Shown here in pieces: positions 3,213-64,000 of a stretch of DNA of 64,000 bases. The stretch lies in the sequence record OR805295.1; one strand, written 5' to 3'. Position numbers and translations under genes: made by a program. The stretch's first letter is position 1; each line of letters opens with the position of its first letter. The notes below the pieces were generated by a model. That model was not told the DNA's origin. It saw only the letters and a program-made list of their open reading frames with translations, and did not search any database.

Positions 3213-3500
3213 ATGGAAGATGATTTAAAAAATATTGTTTCGAAGACTATCTTATCTAATAAAATTAAGATAGTCTCTTTACGTACTGTAGTAAAAACTC
3301 AGTATAAAAGAGTAGACTTCCATTATAAGATAGAATGTGAAAATAGTTCTACAAAACGTAATTTGGTATTTGCCCGTATATGCAAACCATTAGAACACAC
3401 ATTAGGTTCAAAACTTGTTTATGTAGATATTGTGCCTATCAAGTTTAAGAAAGATGAAATGCCATCTACTATTCTATCGGTAAGTGTAATGACTAGTTGA
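3213..3500 (+). CDS. hypothetical protein, 95 aa
   Basis: Follows previous gene by 6 nt. Confidence 0.7.
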   Translation: MEDDLKNIVSKTILSNKIKIVSLRTVVKTQYKRVDFHYKIECENSSTKRNLVFARICKPLEHTLGSKLVYVDIVPIKFKKDEMPSTILSVSVMTS

Positions 3501-12817: not shown

Positions 12818-13003
12818 ATGAATATATTTAAAATTAGTGTTTTATCATATGAAACAATGCAATTAGATACATTGCTTCGATATATTACAATACCCCAACA
12901 TGTACCTATAAAGACTGTTTCTATAGTATATTTAAATGATTCAAAATTTGAAGTATACATTATCTTTGATAATATGAATTATATAATACTCACACATGAA
13001 TAG
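12818..13003 (+). CDS. AT-rich hypothetical mini-ORF
   Basis: Starts 2 nt after previous stop. Confidence 0.5.
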   Translation: MNIFKISVLSYETMQLDTLLRYITIPQHVPIKTVSIVYLNDSKFEVYIIFDNMNYIILTHE

Positions 13004-13223
13004 TATTTTATTAAGATCTAGAATTCTATCATACGAAAATATAAATTCTTTTTTTAATATACTCTCGGCTATCAGTAGTAAGCGTAATCATACCTGGTCT
13101 GCTGTACGCAGCGTATCGTGCGAGTGTTTTAGAGACAATAATTACACACGGGTAAATTTCTCTGTTGAAACCTTTGCAGATAATACATTTACTTTAGCCA
13201 AATATAGAAGTAACAAAGCATAA
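12996..13223 (+). CDS. AT-rich hypothetical mini-ORF
   Basis: 8-nt overlap with previous ORF. Confidence 0.5.
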   Translation: MNSILLRSRILSYENINSFFNILSAISSKRNHTWSAVRSVSCECFRDNNYTRVNFSVETFADNTFTLAKYRSNKA

Positions 13224-13364
13224 CTCTATAATAACCATATATCAATATACACTAAGGTGAAGGGTGAATAGTATAAAATCGAAACTTGTATATAAAGAAA
13301 GTGGATCATACATGATAAAATGAATAAACATATAGGAATGGGTTATATGTGTGATTATGCTGTA

Positions 13365-13494
13365 GTGAAGTGTTGGGAGTGAAGTGTTGGGATGGATTGA
13401 TAGGGGTGAAGTGAAGTGAAATGATTGTATGGAGTGGGTGGAGTGGATTATCTACTAGCACAATTGATTTAAAAAAATGCGTGCTAGCTCCACC
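13365..13494 (+). repeat. purine-rich GTGAAGTG repeat cluster with downstream hairpin
   Basis: GTGAAGTGTTGGGA twice (13365-13392); GTGAAGTGAAGTGAAATGA (13406-13424); GGTGGAG..CTAGCAC pairs with GTGCTAG-CTCCACC (13438-13494). Confidence 0.75.
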
Positions 13495-43194: not shown

Positions 43195-44037
43195 ATGAAT
43201 ACAAAAATTGTAGTTAATTATATTAATAATAAAGAAATGTTAAAGGAAATACATCGTAGTAAAAATTCATTCTGCGAATATATTTCCCCAGAGTATAAAG
43301 ATTACGATATTATCTTTACTTCAAAAGAAGACTGTCTGAAACAAGAAAATATAAACGCAGCAATACTTAAACGAGCAGAGCGTTTAACTCAAGTACAGAT
43401 AGATGAATATGCATTAAGAACAAATACTAGTTCTAAAAAAGCAAAAGCATCTATAACCCAAGTAGATCCTGCAACAATAAATAAACATGATGTTGTTTTT
43501 CGTGTTATAACATACGAACATATTCCAGAAGATCATGATAGGAAAAAGACAAAAAAATCAATTAAAGACTATCATGTTAAGTTAAATTTTACTCCTTTTA
43601 AACATTTTATTATAGACGAAAATAATAACTTAGTAGAAGTAGGCAGAAGTCACAGCAAAAAAGGAGAGTTTTGCTTAACTGGAGGATCTATATCAGATAG
43701 ATTAGCAAAAATGTTTATGTTGTTAATTGACAAATTCGGTCAAAAAAGCAACTGGCGTGGATATTCATATCTAGATGAAATGAAGGGACAAGCTTTACTT
43801 CAGTTAGCGTCTATGGGGTTGCAATTCGACGAACATTTAAGCGATAATCCCTTTGCATATTACACTTCGTCTATAAACAATTCTTTTACTAGGGTATTCA
43901 ACATAGAAAAACGTAATCAAATAATCAGGGACGATTTATTACAAAATATGGGACAAAATCCTAGCCTTACTAGACAATTAGAACACGATGAGCAAATTCG
44001 GTTGCTCAGAGAATTAAATGATTCTAAAGATGATTAA
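43195..44037 (+). CDS. gp55: late transcription sigma factor, T4 gp55-like
   Basis: NYINNKEML; NWRGYSYLDEM; FD...SDNPFAYYT...NSF...EK; adjacent to gp47/46 as in T4. Confidence 0.9.
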   Translation: MNTKIVVNYINNKEMLKEIHRSKNSFCEYISPEYKDYDIIFTSKEDCLKQENINAAILKRAERLTQVQIDEYALRTNTSSKKAKASITQVDPATINKHDVVFRVITYEHIPEDHDRKKTKKSIKDYHVKLNFTPFKHFIIDENNNLVEVGRSHSKKGEFCLTGGSISDRLAKMFMLLIDKFGQKSNWRGYSYLDEMKGQALLQLASMGLQFDEHLSDNPFAYYTSSINNSFTRVFNIEKRNQIIRDDLLQNMGQNPSLTRQLEHDEQIRLLRELNDSKDD

Positions 44038-46816: not shown

Positions 46817-46847
46817 TAAAAAAGAGGCTTAAGCCTCTTTTTTATTA
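46814..46847. terminator. perfect 34-bp palindrome, bidirectional terminator
   Basis: TAATAAAAAAGAGGCTTAAGCCTCTTTTTTATTA contains both convergent stop codons. Confidence 0.85.
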
Positions 46848-47578
46848 GTTTCTATTTTTGCTTTATCTAGTTGCTGTTTACTAATATATTTCGCATTAAT
46901 TGTTATATTTTTGTTATCTTTTGCTTTAGTTAACCTATGAGCACCGTCTATTACATATAGTTTACCGTTGTCTTTATACACTATTATAGGGATGCTCACA
47001 TCGGCAGCTTTTACTCTCGACGGCGCTAATTTGGTATATCGTAATATCCATGTTAAGTCTTTTATTTTAACACTTTCTACAGGAGCATGCTCTGTACTTC
47101 TAAAAATATCATCTAATCTATATTCATTACCATTATGCGTTAATGTACTATGTTTACCTTCTGTATAAGATTCAGAAATAGTATTAATGTTGTTGCCTAT
47201 GTTAGATATTCTTGTTAAACTAGATTCAGTATCAGAAGCTATTATGTCTCTACTATCTCCTGATCCTTTAAAATCGTAAACAATTATTCTTACTACATTA
47301 GGGAATATAGAAGATTTATTTACTTTAAGTCTTTTTATACGGTTACCCTGGGTGTCGTATAATGTTTCGTCAATTATATTAATATTAAAAGATTTTGCTA
47401 AATCCTTTGCAGTAATACCTACCTCTGCGGGCGATTCTTTAGAATATCTAGCCCTATTATCTATTACTAACTCGGTATTGTTAAAAAATGGATATTTATT
47501 CAATACATTGTTTAGTATTTTTTTAAATTTTGTATCTATAGGCTTAAACGGTAAAATCTCACCTTCTATAAATCTCAT
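46829..47578 (-). CDS. protein with C-terminal ParB/sulfiredoxin-like domain
   Basis: PIIVYKDNGKLYVIDGAHRL. Confidence 0.8.
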   Translation of the reverse strand: MRFIEGEILPFKPIDTKFKKILNNVLNKYPFFNNTELVIDNRARYSKESPAEVGITAKDLAKSFNINIIDETLYDTQGNRIKRLKVNKSSIFPNVVRIIVYDFKGSGDSRDIIASDTESSLTRISNIGNNINTISESYTEGKHSTLTHNGNEYRLDDIFRSTEHAPVESVKIKDLTWILRYTKLAPSRVKAADVSIPIIVYKDNGKLYVIDGAHRLTKAKDNKNITINAKYISKQQLDKAKIETNKKEA

Positions 47579-47580
47579 TA

Positions 47581-48078
47581 TTATTTACTCAGCTGTTTTA
47601 CTTTCTCTTTATTCTCTTCTGTCCAGAAATTATTCCAACTACAGAATACCCAACCCTTATAATCTATACTATTATTTACTTTAATACCGGTTTTTTCTTC
47701 AAATACTACCCATTTGCCTTGCCGCGTTATTTTTATAAAAATAATATTAAAATCACCCTCGCTAGCAGTATCGCGTACCTGTGATATCCATGTATCTAAC
47801 TGTTTGCACTCTCCTTCGAACAACGAAGTAAATGAAAATTTTGCATACGATTTACATTCAGAATTAAAATGTTCCCATGTATCCGGAGGGAAAATATCAC
47901 CTTTATAGGATTTGATTTGATTATTACCTAGTGATGTTTTTCTGACAGAATTTTGTCCTCCTATAAAGGCACCTGAATGTGCTGTTCTGGTAAAGGGTTC
48001 GTTGTAAAATGAGGTAAGATCTTTTGCTACATCTCGTTCCCAGCTACTACCTTTAATTTTACTTTTCGATCCAGACAT
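47581..48078 (-). CDS. Holliday junction resolvase, PD-(D/E)XK type
   Basis: SKIKGSSWERDVAK, SGAFIGG, GDI and ECKSY motifs. Confidence 0.85.
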   Translation of the reverse strand: MSGSKSKIKGSSWERDVAKDLTSFYNEPFTRTAHSGAFIGGQNSVRKTSLGNNQIKSYKGDIFPPDTWEHFNSECKSYAKFSFTSLFEGECKQLDTWISQVRDTASEGDFNIIFIKITRQGKWVVFEEKTGIKVNNSIDYKGWVFCSWNNFWTEENKEKVKQLSK

Positions 48079-48152
48079 GTTTTGTTAACCTTTTATATAC
48101 CTGTTAAATTTTACATTATTTAGTTAATTTTATACCCATATAATACTGTCGA

Positions 48153-48160
48153 GATAAATA
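48153..48160 (+). promoter_or_regulatory. late promoter GATAAATA upstream of large ncRNA candidate
   Basis: No ORF downstream for 1.4 kb. Confidence 0.6.
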
Positions 48161-48209
48161 TGTGTGTAGATAACTTATAGCATTATTTTTAACGATTTTA
48201 GTACAATGG

Positions 48210-48238
48210 TTGACAGTATTAATGTCGTATGCTATAAT
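48210..48238 (+). promoter_or_regulatory. consensus sigma70 promoter
   Basis: TTGACA-17-TATAAT with extended TG; no ORF downstream. Confidence 0.9.
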
Positions 48239-48243
48239 CCGCA

Positions 48244-49146
48244 ACATAATAAAACTAAAGGACGTATGTAACAAAACAGACGTTCTCCTAAGTGTTTTAA
48301 AGTTTTTGCTTAGGAAGACCCAGTTGTATGTTTAAAGGGTGAACGGTAACGGGCATTCTTGTTTAAGACTAGTTCTTATGAAGACATTGGCAACTAACAT
48401 AGCAGCTTTGTTCCATCATTGGATATTGGTAGTAGAAACTATCCCCATCGTGCCTTTACTGTAGTACCGTTAGAGACGGAGATAACGCAGGAAAAAAGGT
48501 TATTTAAATTATGATTTTGGGTGCTGCAGAACACTTTCGTAAACAAAAGGAATATAGTTTACGTATACACAACGGGAACGGGAAAAAGCTTTTTAAGCAA
48601 AAACGAGTCCCTGGTAATTGGTGTTTAACGGGAGTGACGTCCCAAATGTTATTCATTGATTAACACTGTAAGAAGGTTGTAAGGGTTATTGTGTTCGAAG
48701 TGGTTTACACAACTGTTCTTCCTACATTTATGTACAGAAGTGTAAACGAAAGGATGTTGCTCTGGTAGAAAAAGATCAACGTACTTTATGACACTATCCT
48801 TGTGACATATGTACTTGTACCAACAACAGCCGCAGGTTACGGATATGGTATTACAAACTGTACTGCGGTTCCGGGAGTTGAAAGTGGATGTTAGCTTAGG
48901 TGGCTGTTTGCTTAATTATAATGTTTAATTTAGGCAATATAAGCGTCGGGTGAGGCTTTCGTAGGTTGCGTGTTTATGCTACGGTGTAAATGGGCTAGAC
49001 TACTGGCGCATACATGAGTATTGTAGGATTGGCGCTTTAATAAAGAAATTTGTTAAAGTTTGAGTTTAGCTCCCCGCTCATTAGCAATAAACGTTGCTAG
49101 TCGATAGTATACCCACGCCTAAATAATGCCGTCATTGTTTAGTTTT
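48244..49146 (+). ncRNA. candidate large structured non-coding RNA, about 900 nt
   Basis: Consensus promoter; 5' AAAACTAAA(48251)..GACG pairs with 3' CGTC..TTTAGTTTT(49146); more than 15 internal helices; GC about 42-45 percent in two sampled lines; no ORF of 60 aa or more. Confidence 0.75.
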
Positions 49147-49154
49147 TTTAAAAA

Positions 49155-49439
49155 ATATAATTGTCAATTATATGTCGTACGCATCTACCCCGAAAAGGGG
49201 TAGATGTTTATGACTTTCGTTTACACTCATGTCATAATCAGTACACGCCATTTTAGGCCATTCTACATCAATACACTGCTTCTAGCAGTGTATTGGACAT
49301 ACAAAATAATCTTAAATTATATCAAATTTGTTTAATTACTTTAATTTTGTTACTTTAGTAACTTGTATTTTGTTTATATGAGTTGTAGTTTACGAAAACG
49401 AATATAAACAAAATACATATGTGAACTGTAGTTCACATA
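49155..49439. repeat. cluster of seven inverted repeats
   Basis: Stems at 49155-49173, 49182-49206, 49208-49237, 49269-49295, 49349-49362, 49364-49417 (16 bp) and 49418-49439. Confidence 0.9.
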
Positions 49440-49551
49440 CTTACTAACGTTGTATATTACGGTAATTCTATAAAATATCTCTATATAATTATAAACGTTT
49501 TATGGCATACTACGACTAAACGAAATTGAAAATTAACTAGAGATTTAATTA

Positions 49552-49559
49552 GATAAATA
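49552..49559 (+). promoter_or_regulatory. late promoter GATAAATA
   Basis: Upstream of 49592. Confidence 0.65.
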
Positions 49560-49591
49560 ATATTGTAAAAATTGTATAGAGGTATACATCA

Positions 49592-50044
49592 ATGAACGAT
49601 TACACACATTACACAGAGGAAGATTTCATATTTTTAGCATATGATTTAAATACTCAGCTTATAAATGATGGATATCCTGACGCTGCTGTAAAATTTATTA
49701 CTAATCAGTTTATTTTAGAGCATAGACATCCTGACGAAATAAAACGTTGTATAGGATGTAATTCTAAAATGTATGAAGATGTTATTGCTACTAAGAGAAA
49801 TTTATCTGGTAAATCGCATTGCAGACATTGCGAATCGAAACTTAGTATGTATAAGGAAGTTGTTAAGGAAGTAGCAAATACAACACAAATACTTCGCATA
49901 CCAGAAAAACATTTAAATTCAGTTAAACGATTAATTAGAATATATAATGAGCAAAACAAAACTGGTGCATATCAGAGTATATTAGTTAAAACAAAGAAAC
50001 TTAACACAGGAGTTTCTAAAAAGTCAAAAAGAAAGGGACGTTAA
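49592..50044 (+). CDS. hypothetical protein with CxxC...CxxC zinc finger and basic tail
   Basis: CIGC...CRHC; GAGG RBS. Confidence 0.85.
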   Translation: MNDYTHYTEEDFIFLAYDLNTQLINDGYPDAAVKFITNQFILEHRHPDEIKRCIGCNSKMYEDVIATKRNLSGKSHCRHCESKLSMYKEVVKEVANTTQILRIPEKHLNSVKRLIRIYNEQNKTGAYQSILVKTKKLNTGVSKKSKRKGR

Positions 50045-62677: not shown

Positions 62678-62702
62678 AAAAGGAGCATAATGCTCCTTTT
62701 TT
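62676..62702. terminator. Rho-independent terminator
   Basis: AAAAAAGGAGCA-TAA-TGCTCCTTTTTT. Confidence 0.85.
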
Positions 62703-62705
62703 ATT

Positions 62706-62713
62706 GATAAATA
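62706..62713 (+). promoter_or_regulatory. late promoter GATAAATA
   Basis: 25 nt upstream of ATG 62738. Confidence 0.75.
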
Positions 62714-62737
62714 TATGCATCTTAAGGAATAAGGTGT

Positions 62738-64000
62738 ATGTCGAGTAAAATTAAATTCACGGATCAATATATCCTATCTAGTGTTGGGCAAACTTCTAAT
62801 AATATAGTATATTTGCAAGTAAATGATGATCAGCAATTAGTTGTTACTCATCCTATGTATGCAACTGAATGGTCTACATTAGGTGGGCTTAGAGTAACAG
62901 GTGATCAGTCTAAATTTGATGGATCATTAGAAGTTGGATATGAATTGCTAGTAGGACAAACATCTACCTTTAACAACGACATGGTAGTAAACGGTTTAGT
63001 TACAGTAAACAGAGATTCTCTAGATGCAATGCTCATTCACGGGAATGTTACATTACATGGCAACTTAACTGTAGTAGGTAGCAGCTCAGGGACTACACCC
63101 GGGCAAGTAACTATTTCCGACAACATTATGGTCGTGAATACAGATGACGTAGGTCCGGGCGTCACTGCAACATATTCTGGTTTTGAAGTCCAGCGTGGAA
63201 TTCCCGTAGGCGAAACTAATAGTCACGGTGAACCTGGCCAAGGTAAATTGCCTTCTGCTGGATTAGTTTGGAATGAAGTGCAAAAATCCTGGGATCTTAA
63301 TTATAACCCTATTCTTTCTGAAAAATTACCACAAAATCCTAGAATAATTAACTTAGGGCAGCCAGTTGCTGACAACGATGCTTCTACAAAAAAATATGTG
63401 AATGATAGCATAACTGCTGCACTTGACGATGATATTTATTTAGATAGACTTACTGATGTAACAATTTCTTCTCCGGCTAATAAAAATATACTACAGTACG
63501 ATTCTTCTACATCGCAATGGAGAAATTTACCATATTCGTTTATACGATTAACGGATGTAACTGGTGTATCTGTCCCGAGAGGATATGTAAGATGGAATGC
63601 AGCAGGAACACAGTTAGTATATGAAACCACTATAGATTATGCACAGTTAACTGGATTGTCTGATGTAGCTAAAGCAGGACAAGGGGCTCTAAGTTTTCTT
63701 AGTGATGTAACGTTATCATCGTTATCTAATACACAGGCATTATTTTATAATGGAACCTCTTGGGTTAATAGACTAATTAATTACTCCGACATTCAAAATA
63801 CTCCTACTAACAATTCGTATAGTTTTATTGGATTAAATGATACAAATAATACAGTTGTTAATAACGGATATGTAAGATGGAATGCAGCAGGAACACAGTT
63901 AGTATATGAAACCACTATAGATTATGCACAGTTAACTGGATTGTCTGATGTAGCTAAAGCAGGACAAGGATCGTTAGATTATTTAACAGATGTTAGTATA
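62738..64000 (+). CDS. fibre-like structural protein, runs off window end (absent from ORF track)
   Basis: MSSKIKFTDQY...; GNLTVVG, DNIMVVN, DASTKKYV and repeated LxxLxDVxI motifs; late promoter and AAGG RBS. Confidence 0.85.
   Translation, partial: MSSKIKFTDQYILSSVGQTSNNIVYLQVNDDQQLVVTHPMYATEWSTLGGLRVTGDQSKFDGSLEVGYELLVGQTSTFNNDMVVNGLVTVNRDSLDAMLIHGNVTLHGNLTVVGSSSGTTPGQVTISDNIMVVNTDDVGPGVTATYSGFEVQRGIPVGETNSHGEPGQGKLPSAGLVWNEVQKSWDLNYNPILSEKLPQNPRIINLGQPVADNDASTKKYVNDSITAALDDDIYLDRLTDVTISSPANKNILQYDSSTSQWRNLPYSFIRLTDVTGVSVPRGYVRWNAAGTQLVYETTIDYAQLTGLSDVAKAGQGALSFLSDVTLSSLSNTQALFYNGTSWVNRLINYSDIQNTPTNNSYSFIGLNDTNNTVVNNGYVRWNAAGTQLVYETTIDYAQLTGLSDVAKAGQGSLDYLTDVSI
63581..63969 (+). repeat. 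exact 104-bp intragenic duplication, period 285 bp
   Basis: 63581-63684 equals 63866-63969; encodes GYVRWNAAGTQLVYETTIDYAQLTGLSDVAKAGQG. Confidence 0.95.

Follow-up and report, generated by a model that had tools for sequence, protein, structure and literature searches.

The genome of the Pseudomonas phage Paride very likely harbours the gene of a large non-coding RNA (ncRNA) that would act in trans: in the stretch of DNA analysed here (the window, 64 kb covering ~186001-250000 of OR805295.1), the gene lies on the + strand at 48246-49211 (within 234150-235250 of the record) and its product, an RNA of ~965 nucleotides (nt) whose fold is complex and conserved, exceeds in length its two paralogues in Wroclawvirus genomes. 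Paride itself is a 287-kb jumbo myovirus of P. aeruginosa, a PA5oct-like member of Wroclawvirus. The gene is an independent unit: it is non-coding, has its own sigma70 promoter and terminal hairpin, and is preceded by a late-promoter-like motif. Within the sequences compared, sequence blocks and predicted base-pairing are conserved across five phage lineages and three paralogues. A large, highly structured + strand ncRNA with sigma70 and late-type promoters had been proposed from the letters of the window (hereafter the original prediction), and the analysis supports that proposal.

The RNA sits in a 1.5-kb gap (48079-49591) which, as the original prediction described, has no open reading frame (ORF) of 60 aa or more (the longest has 52 aa) and is raised in GC content, 0.36-0.41 against 0.24-0.30 in the flanks; GC skew is positive. 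No other genuine ORF-free gap of the window reaches 450 nt; a second candidate, at 62678-63435, was rejected because the ORF found there runs past the window end. Cultured phages offer no variation at this locus: the 1.1 kb around the RNA, which matches Paride at 100%, shares 99.5-99.8% identity with ten further Wroclawvirus records (PA5oct and MIJ3 among them), and blastn against GenBank phages returned no match beyond these 11 near-identical Wroclawvirus genomes. Given this near-identity, homologues were sought through neighbouring proteins. Relatives of the adjoining RusA-like resolvase in SRA and ENA assemblies (70%, 64% and 53% identity) led to syntenic contigs (L168-170, L171/172 and L173), each with an ORF-free stretch that matches the window RNA, in L168-170 with an nhmmer E of 5e-22. 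The matches in L171/172, L173 and L182 were found with a covariance model at E 1e-12 to 1e-29, L182 being an IMG/VR contig added by a motif scan. All are on jumbo-phage contigs; L168-170, L171 and L182 are syntenic with RusA and/or the baseplate hub, and in L173 the RNA lies ~5 kb from RusA with other genes intervening. The motif scan, which used 19 specified bases of domain 1 (described below), gave nine viral and ten metagenome matches, of which one (L182) was true; most of the others fall in an apparent single conserved coding-gene family. Two further candidates, L204 (the sole addition of a two-anchor pattern scan) and L207 (the sole match of a GTDB genome scan), were rejected as chance matches. 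Among cultured phages the closest RusA is that of Salicola phage SCTP-2 (49% identity), but no gap adjoins it. Conservation between the homologues is blocky, near-invariant strands alternating with stretches that vary in sequence and length, the usual pattern of structured RNAs.

Domain 1 (48400-48529, +) is a four-way junction, and the same fold appears in the independent minimum free energy (MFE) structures of Paride, L168 and L171. It consists of a closing helix P1 (GCAGC/GCUGC), the variable hairpins P2 and P5, a conserved hairpin P3 (GGUAGU-AGAA-ACUAUC) and a helix P4 (CCCA/UGGG); it also carries a UAUGAUYUUGGGUG strand, a family feature that is present in the window copy. The covariance model of this domain (R1, 112 positions, 18 pairs) scores 94.6 bits at 48400-48529 of the window and 56-117 bits across seven members, and detected nothing significant in unrelated loci. 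In the alignment of the seven sequences, which was fitted to its model and to that extent favours structure, pairing holds in 96.8% of cells and double-sided change is seen in 9 of the 18 pairs; covariation scores 0.447, compared with 0.203 +/- 0.033 in shuffles (none of 500 reaches the real value) and at most 0.122 in controls with slid partners. In six of the seven sequences, the arms of P1, in particular, read GCAGC/GCUGC, GCUGC/GCAGC, GUAGC/GCUAC, GCGAC/GUCGC, GUGAC/GUCAC and GUGGC/GCCAC. Outside domain 1, a long-range helix, D/E, pairs UGUUG (48755-48759) with CAACA (48824-48828, +) and encloses a conserved GCUCUGG...AGA hairpin. Its five pairs are all kept in all six sequences that contain block D, through five combinations of arms (UGUUG/CAACA, UGAUG/CAUCA, UGAAG/CUUCA, UCCUG/CAGGA and UCCUG/CAGGG). 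Block D itself (the ..GCUCUG.. hairpin) was not found in L171.

Folded as a whole, the + strand reaches an MFE of -277.5 kcal/mol (z -4.4) versus -210.3 (z -2.1) for the - strand, in agreement with the strand originally proposed. Of the 137 pairs in the RNAalifold consensus of Paride and L168, 36 show double-sided change; the consensus energy is -91.3 kcal/mol versus -49.0 +/- 6.1 in 60 column-shuffled alignments (z -7.0); on the opposite strand the consensus energy is -65.9 kcal/mol. The covariation test that the original prediction had suggested was thus run and passed, by this consensus, by domain 1 and by the D/E helix. Its individual helices fared unevenly: all the complementary pairs do exist, at or near the places where they had been read, and conservation extends to some of them. 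GGTAGT/ACTATC, GTTTACAC/GTGTAAAC and CCGCAG/CTGCGG each show compensatory change in a homologue, and TCCTAAG/CTTAGGA is partly backed by covariation (4 of 7 pairs in the L168 consensus fold). The terminal pairing of AAAACTAAA with TTTAGTTTT, thought to close a molecule of 890 nt, appears in the single-sequence MFE only and is not conserved in L168. Similarly, a proposed long-range GACG/CGTC pair is not supported, its bases forming instead a local covarying hairpin at 48262-48283. This 5' hairpin (ACGUAUGU/ACAGACGU, +) is part of the Paride/L168 consensus, where it shows two double-sided changes, and is followed by the hairpin UCCUAAG/CUUAGGA (48286-48315, +), whose arms are GUAGG/CCUAC in L168. 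Further downstream, a long hairpin (GUUUACAC/GUGUAAAC, 48703-48747, +) forms 8 of its 8 pairs in the MFE and again in the Paride/L168 consensus, where several are changed on both sides. The hairpin CCGCAG/CUGCGG with its inner UACGG/CUGUA stem (48830-48868, +) is also found in both; here L168 reads CAUCUG/CAGAUG, that is, three double-sided changes.

The ends of the gene are predicted from its promoter on the 5' side and from a conserved hairpin on the 3' side. The sigma70 promoter, TTGACA-17-(TG)TATAAT (48210-48238, +), scores 12/12 with a TG extension and is the only zero-mismatch match to TTGACA-17-TATAAT in the 64 kb, confirming the perfect promoter of the original prediction. Its position is kept in L168 (TATACT), L171 (TATAGT) and L182 (TTGATA/TATAAT); no sigma70-type promoter was found in L173. 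A late-promoter-like motif, GATAAATA, lies ~85 nt upstream of the sigma70 start site (48153-48160, +) and is also found upstream of the orthologous RNA in L168 and L171. The window holds nine copies of it (22020, 38009, 43113, 48153, 49552, 51142, 51162, 57070 and 62706), including copies in the structural-gene region and on both sides of the divergent hub/51192 gene pair. The eight others all stand upstream of a gene start on the same strand, at 21-133 nt for the seven measured by script and ~26 nt before the ATG read at 62739 for the eighth, and for this reason we consider that GATAAATA behaves as a phage late promoter, as had been claimed for the motif preceding the gap. It likely represents the consensus late promoter read by the gp55-like sigma in this group of phages, and a gp55-like late sigma is indeed encoded at 43195-44037. 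The T4 counterpart, TATAAATA, occurs only twice, versus nine times for GATAAATA. At the other end, a GC-rich hairpin followed by UUUAU (49182-49206, +, inverted repeat I7) is a probable terminator or 3'-end protector, with equivalents in L168, L171 and L182 that show compensatory change. The RNA most likely ends after this hairpin rather than at 49146, the 3' end first proposed, which lies upstream of it.

The window RNA (copy A) is not alone: the RNA body is matched at three places in every Wroclawvirus record, and R1 together with nhmmer places the other two in PA5oct (MK797984.1). Copy B is ncRNA004 (EST35_0353, annotated as 'putative lncRNA', a long non-coding RNA), ~620 nt at 246116-246734 with an R1 score of 88.6 bits; with its upstream part it corresponds to L206:2606-3235 (PA5oct ~246105-246734). 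Copy C, ~530 nt, lies at ~12867-13399 in an unannotated 911-nt gap within the 39-kb terminal repeat (R1 82.7 bits) and, the terminal repeat being present twice, virion DNA would hold four copies of the family. The three copies are 79-83% identical in domain 1 and 89-93% identical in block D and have little else in common. Each has its own promoter (a perfect TTGACA-17-TATAAT in copy C, TTGACA-17-TAAACT in ncRNA004) and each has a terminal hairpin. Compared with the window copy, ncRNA004 is 83% identical in domain 1 and 89% in block D and has the same D/E helix with compensatory changes, a sigma70-type promoter and the terminal hairpin; in contrast, it is shorter (~620 versus ~965 nt), lies in another genomic region, lacks the upstream late-promoter motif and does not align with the window copy outside the two shared blocks. 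RNA-seq identified ncRNA004 as a discrete transcript (Lood et al. 2020, PMC7318152), and its published ends, ~11 nt past the predicted start and ~24 nt past the hairpin, match the predicted promoter and hairpin and support the ends inferred for the window copy. That one paralogue was already annotated as an lncRNA reduces the novelty of the RNA. For ncRNA004, the PA5oct paper (PMC7318152) reports no structure, family or paralogy, and the Paride paper makes no mention of RNA: the family has been glimpsed in the literature through ncRNA004 and never recognised as a family.

The neighbourhood of the gene corresponds in part to what had been described. The resolvase is there, as a RusA-like gene (47581-48078, - strand); a tape-measure gene is not, its place being taken by a 150-aa ORF (49592-50044, +), which is the next real gene and has no relatives in IMG/VR, and by the baseplate hub. 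SbcCD is also nearby and the portal gene is ~4.4 kb from the RNA, so that the window copy lies within the structural and packaging module. RusA and an adjoining gene (46829-48078; 249 aa in Paride) are inverted in Paride, L168 and L171, which makes RusA divergent from the RNA gene; in relatives carrying a different element (family X, see below; L004, L007, L008 and L045), RusA is oriented as SbcCD. Between the RNA and the 150-aa ORF, a cluster of palindromes (49269-49440; inverted repeats I14, I1 and I21) comprises 49269-49295, 49364-49417 and 49418-49439, with arms of 12, 26 and 10 nt. Together with a terminator-like site on the - strand (49440-49417), these are probably bidirectional terminators. 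A similar palindrome, gagttgtagtttacgaaaacgaatata, follows ncRNA004 (L206 ~3290-3320). A GATAAATA copy at 49552-49559 (+), 33 nt upstream of the ATG of the 150-aa ORF, marks the end of the RNA unit.

Several observations weigh against a discrete, functional RNA at this locus. The PA5oct study describes four ncRNAs, none of them at the locus of the window RNA (PMC7318152), where its authors annotated small coding sequences (CDSs) and no ncRNA. Even ncRNA004 represents 0.02-0.08% of phage reads (PMC7318152). The U-tract after the 49182-49206 hairpin is weak, and the hairpin is absent from the terminator scan listing. The comparative support comes from seven sequences, in alignments fitted to a model built from four, and the 3' third of the RNA (~48900-49180) has little such support.

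How the RNA could function is suggested by its promoters and by what its paralogues share. PA5oct depends on the host RNA polymerase (PMC7318152), and a consensus sigma70 promoter would thus suit immediate expression: the host enzyme would transcribe the RNA from the first minutes of infection. The late motif belongs to the window copy only, which lies amid late structural genes; late expression would therefore continue, the gp55-like late sigma keeping the RNA expressed at later stages. Judging only from these promoters, we infer expression throughout infection. A function based on shape is favoured because the core is conserved across the paralogues and the peripheral hairpins are variable. 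The folded RNA would then act in trans as a stable particle; our best guess is that it serves as a scaffold or decoy to which proteins of the host or phage bind, and it might self-assemble in the manner of the ornate RNAs ROOL and GOLLD. A common activity would reside in the core that the copies share (domain 1 and the D/E domain), and the copy-specific expansions would tune its timing or its partners.

Alternatively, the locus could be a transcription-primed replication origin, in which the G-rich transcript primes DNA synthesis as an R-loop, with three paralogues for three origins. Such priming occurs at T4 oriF/oriG and with ColE1 RNA II, whose transcripts are likewise promoter-driven, structured, G-rich and close to replication and recombination genes. 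Consistent with such a role, GC skew is positive and GC is raised on the transcribed strand, each genome has three promoter-plus-transcript copies, including the one in the terminal repeat, and the recombination/repair genes RusA and SbcCD adjoin. PA5oct also encodes an RNase H-like protein (PMC7318152). Nevertheless, we consider an origin unlikely: long-range RNA pairing (P1, D/E) and a four-way junction are clearly under selection, which a simple R-loop origin does not need, and neither an AT-rich unwinding element nor iterons were found in the RNA body. Moreover, the ColE1 and T4 transcripts are cis-acting primers without a large junction-rich conserved fold, whereas the conserved terminal hairpin of the window RNA points to a released transcript and its paralogue ncRNA004 has been seen as a discrete RNA.

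A second possibility follows the GenBank annotation, in which the transcript would be the messenger RNA of very small proteins, or else a long structured leader. The deposited records do place CDSs over the RNA gene (48116-49335), Paride_0451-0456 in OR805295.1 and EST35_0142-0145 in MK797984.1, all hypothetical and of 31-52 aa, and a gene on the same strand follows at 49592. However, the nine small ORFs of the locus match no Pfam or PHROG family, and neither L168, L171, L173 and L182 nor the paralogues conserve any small ORF or peptide, large indels interrupting these. Between Paride and its closest homologue, substitutions are spread over the three codon positions (0.426/0.453/0.416), that is, without 3-nt periodicity. 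The four to six annotated small CDSs over the RNA gene are therefore probably spurious as judged from these sequence comparisons. As for a leader, hairpins stand between the RNA and the next gene, which is served by a late promoter of its own, and in L168 an opposite-strand gene stands between the RNA and the homologue of the 49592 gene. Either version thus seems very unlikely.

It is also highly improbable that the locus is a remnant devoid of function, left by a decayed gene or a mobile element and folding by chance: the slot is indeed variable among relatives, some of which hold unrelated sequences there, and RusA and the adjoining 249-aa gene are inverted in this lineage, but blocks, promoter, terminal hairpin and compensated pairs persist where RusA is only 53-70% identical, three paralogues are maintained and no protein-level similarity was found.

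Almost no weight can be given to a very divergent member of a described class (GOLLD, ROOL, OLE, RNase P or a group I/II intron), for all that size range and phage origin recall GOLLD and ROOL. The Rfam search, proposed in the original prediction as a check, was run: Rfam 15 at gathering thresholds gave no match in the whole window, the relatives or the paralogues, and at E<=10 on 47900-49700 returned as noise only unrelated families at E of at least 0.5 (the best being nqrA-II, E 0.5). In particular, the GOLLD and ROOL covariance models had no match in the window at gathering scores, nor on 47900-49700 at E<=10, and the models of OLE, RNase P, tmRNA, 6S and group I/II introns had no match in the window. 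ARAGORN found no tRNA or tmRNA gene in the 64 kb, unlike the usual GOLLD/ROOL context, where tRNA genes are nearby. In the absence of an Rfam 15 match, the RNA is not GOLLD, ROOL or OLE; of the two options first put forward, a divergent member or a new class, the searches thus support a new class and speak against a divergent GOLLD or ROOL.

Among known systems, the RNA proposed here resembles GOLLD and ROOL, which are multi-domain ncRNAs of 0.5-1 kb, often borne by phages or prophages, and both of which are reported to self-assemble, as seen by cryo-EM (bioRxiv 10.1101/2024.12.08.627333). It differs from them in the lack of a covariance-model match and of adjacent tRNA genes, in its host group (Pseudomonas jumbo myoviruses) and in its conserved motifs, which are unrelated. 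The phi29 prohead RNA (pRNA) is another phage-encoded structured RNA made from a host-polymerase promoter, and the window copy is situated in the structural and packaging module; in contrast, pRNA is ~170 nt long with a well-known fold, while the window RNA has no Rfam match.

In more distant relatives, other ORF-free elements occupy the slot beside the baseplate hub. Following RusA through IMG/VR yielded 43 loci, none of them similar in sequence to the window RNA, and revealed a family of ~530 nt elements that, in uncultured jumbo-phage contigs, separate RusA from the baseplate hub (family X; L004:6553-7073, L007:5667-6216, L008:6523-7050, L045:6523-7049 and L047-L166), with ~75% identity among four contigs. 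A single 16-mer retrieved at least 120 IMG/VR loci, and nhmmer confirmed 120 of the 120 listed. Over 85 distinct sequences, 89.2% of 92 predicted pairs are canonical and 67 of the 92 are changed on both sides, versus 44.6 +/- 2.4 in shuffles. Family X thus resembles the window RNA in its slot, in being ORF-free and strongly structured with covariation, and in its absence from Rfam (GenBank phages gave no match either); it is shorter and has no detectable sequence or domain-1 similarity to it, a profile of the 85 sequences giving no match in 48000-49600 (nhmmer --max) and R1 none on the family X loci. At L202:6629-6710, inside a called 173-aa gene, positions 16-93 of the family X profile, in its 5' part, are matched at E 4e-10; the contig is otherwise devoid of the element.

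A further family of ~640 nt (family Y; L194:7110-7819, L197:6659-7308, L199:6659-7289 and L200:6659-7294, on the - strand of these loci) contains no called gene and lies near the hub and lysozyme genes of another clade; its members are 71-84% identical. Its consensus fold has a z of -8.4 and codon periodicity is absent; stop-free stretches of 70-111 aa leave a small chance of coding. A 1.4-kb gap in L201 shares a 23-nt exact match with family Y, and the same contig (L201:1-2392) carries a portal gene with an intein (Pfam Intein_splicing between two Portal_T4 matches). Between families X, Y and that of the window, neither shared conserved k-mers nor nhmmer or covariance-model cross-matches were found, and X and Y lack domain 1; a single superfamily was accordingly rejected for want of shared sequence, as was a resemblance in L193, which did not hold up.

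Large ncRNAs with junction-rich folds are, to our knowledge, rare, and all such classes that we know of (RNase P, group I/II introns, OLE, GOLLD, ROOL) have proved to be ribozymes, cores of ribonucleoproteins or self-assembling cages. Paride can be cultivated on P. aeruginosa PAO1 and is studied for phage therapy and the killing of dormant cells, meaning that its RNA can be examined directly, unlike most RNAs known only from metagenomes. Recognition of the RNA corrects the annotation of eleven GenBank genomes, with their four to six probably spurious small CDSs, and gives the orphan lncRNA ncRNA004 a family, one whose core structure can be tested. The presence of unrelated structured elements in one slot hints at a wider RNA requirement in this clade. 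We therefore put forward, as a tentative possibility that we hold to be rather less probable than its opposite, that a large folded RNA encoded beside the baseplate-hub gene is a requirement of the T4-like jumbo phages in this clade and that unrelated families fill the slot in different lineages, namely that of Paride and PA5oct, with three paralogues of 0.5-1 kb, the ~530-nt family X of at least 120 viral contigs, and family Y, of ~640 nt. Should this hold, they would be new classes of ornate RNA, forming RNA or RNA-protein particles that act in infection, for example as assembly scaffolds or as decoys against host defence.

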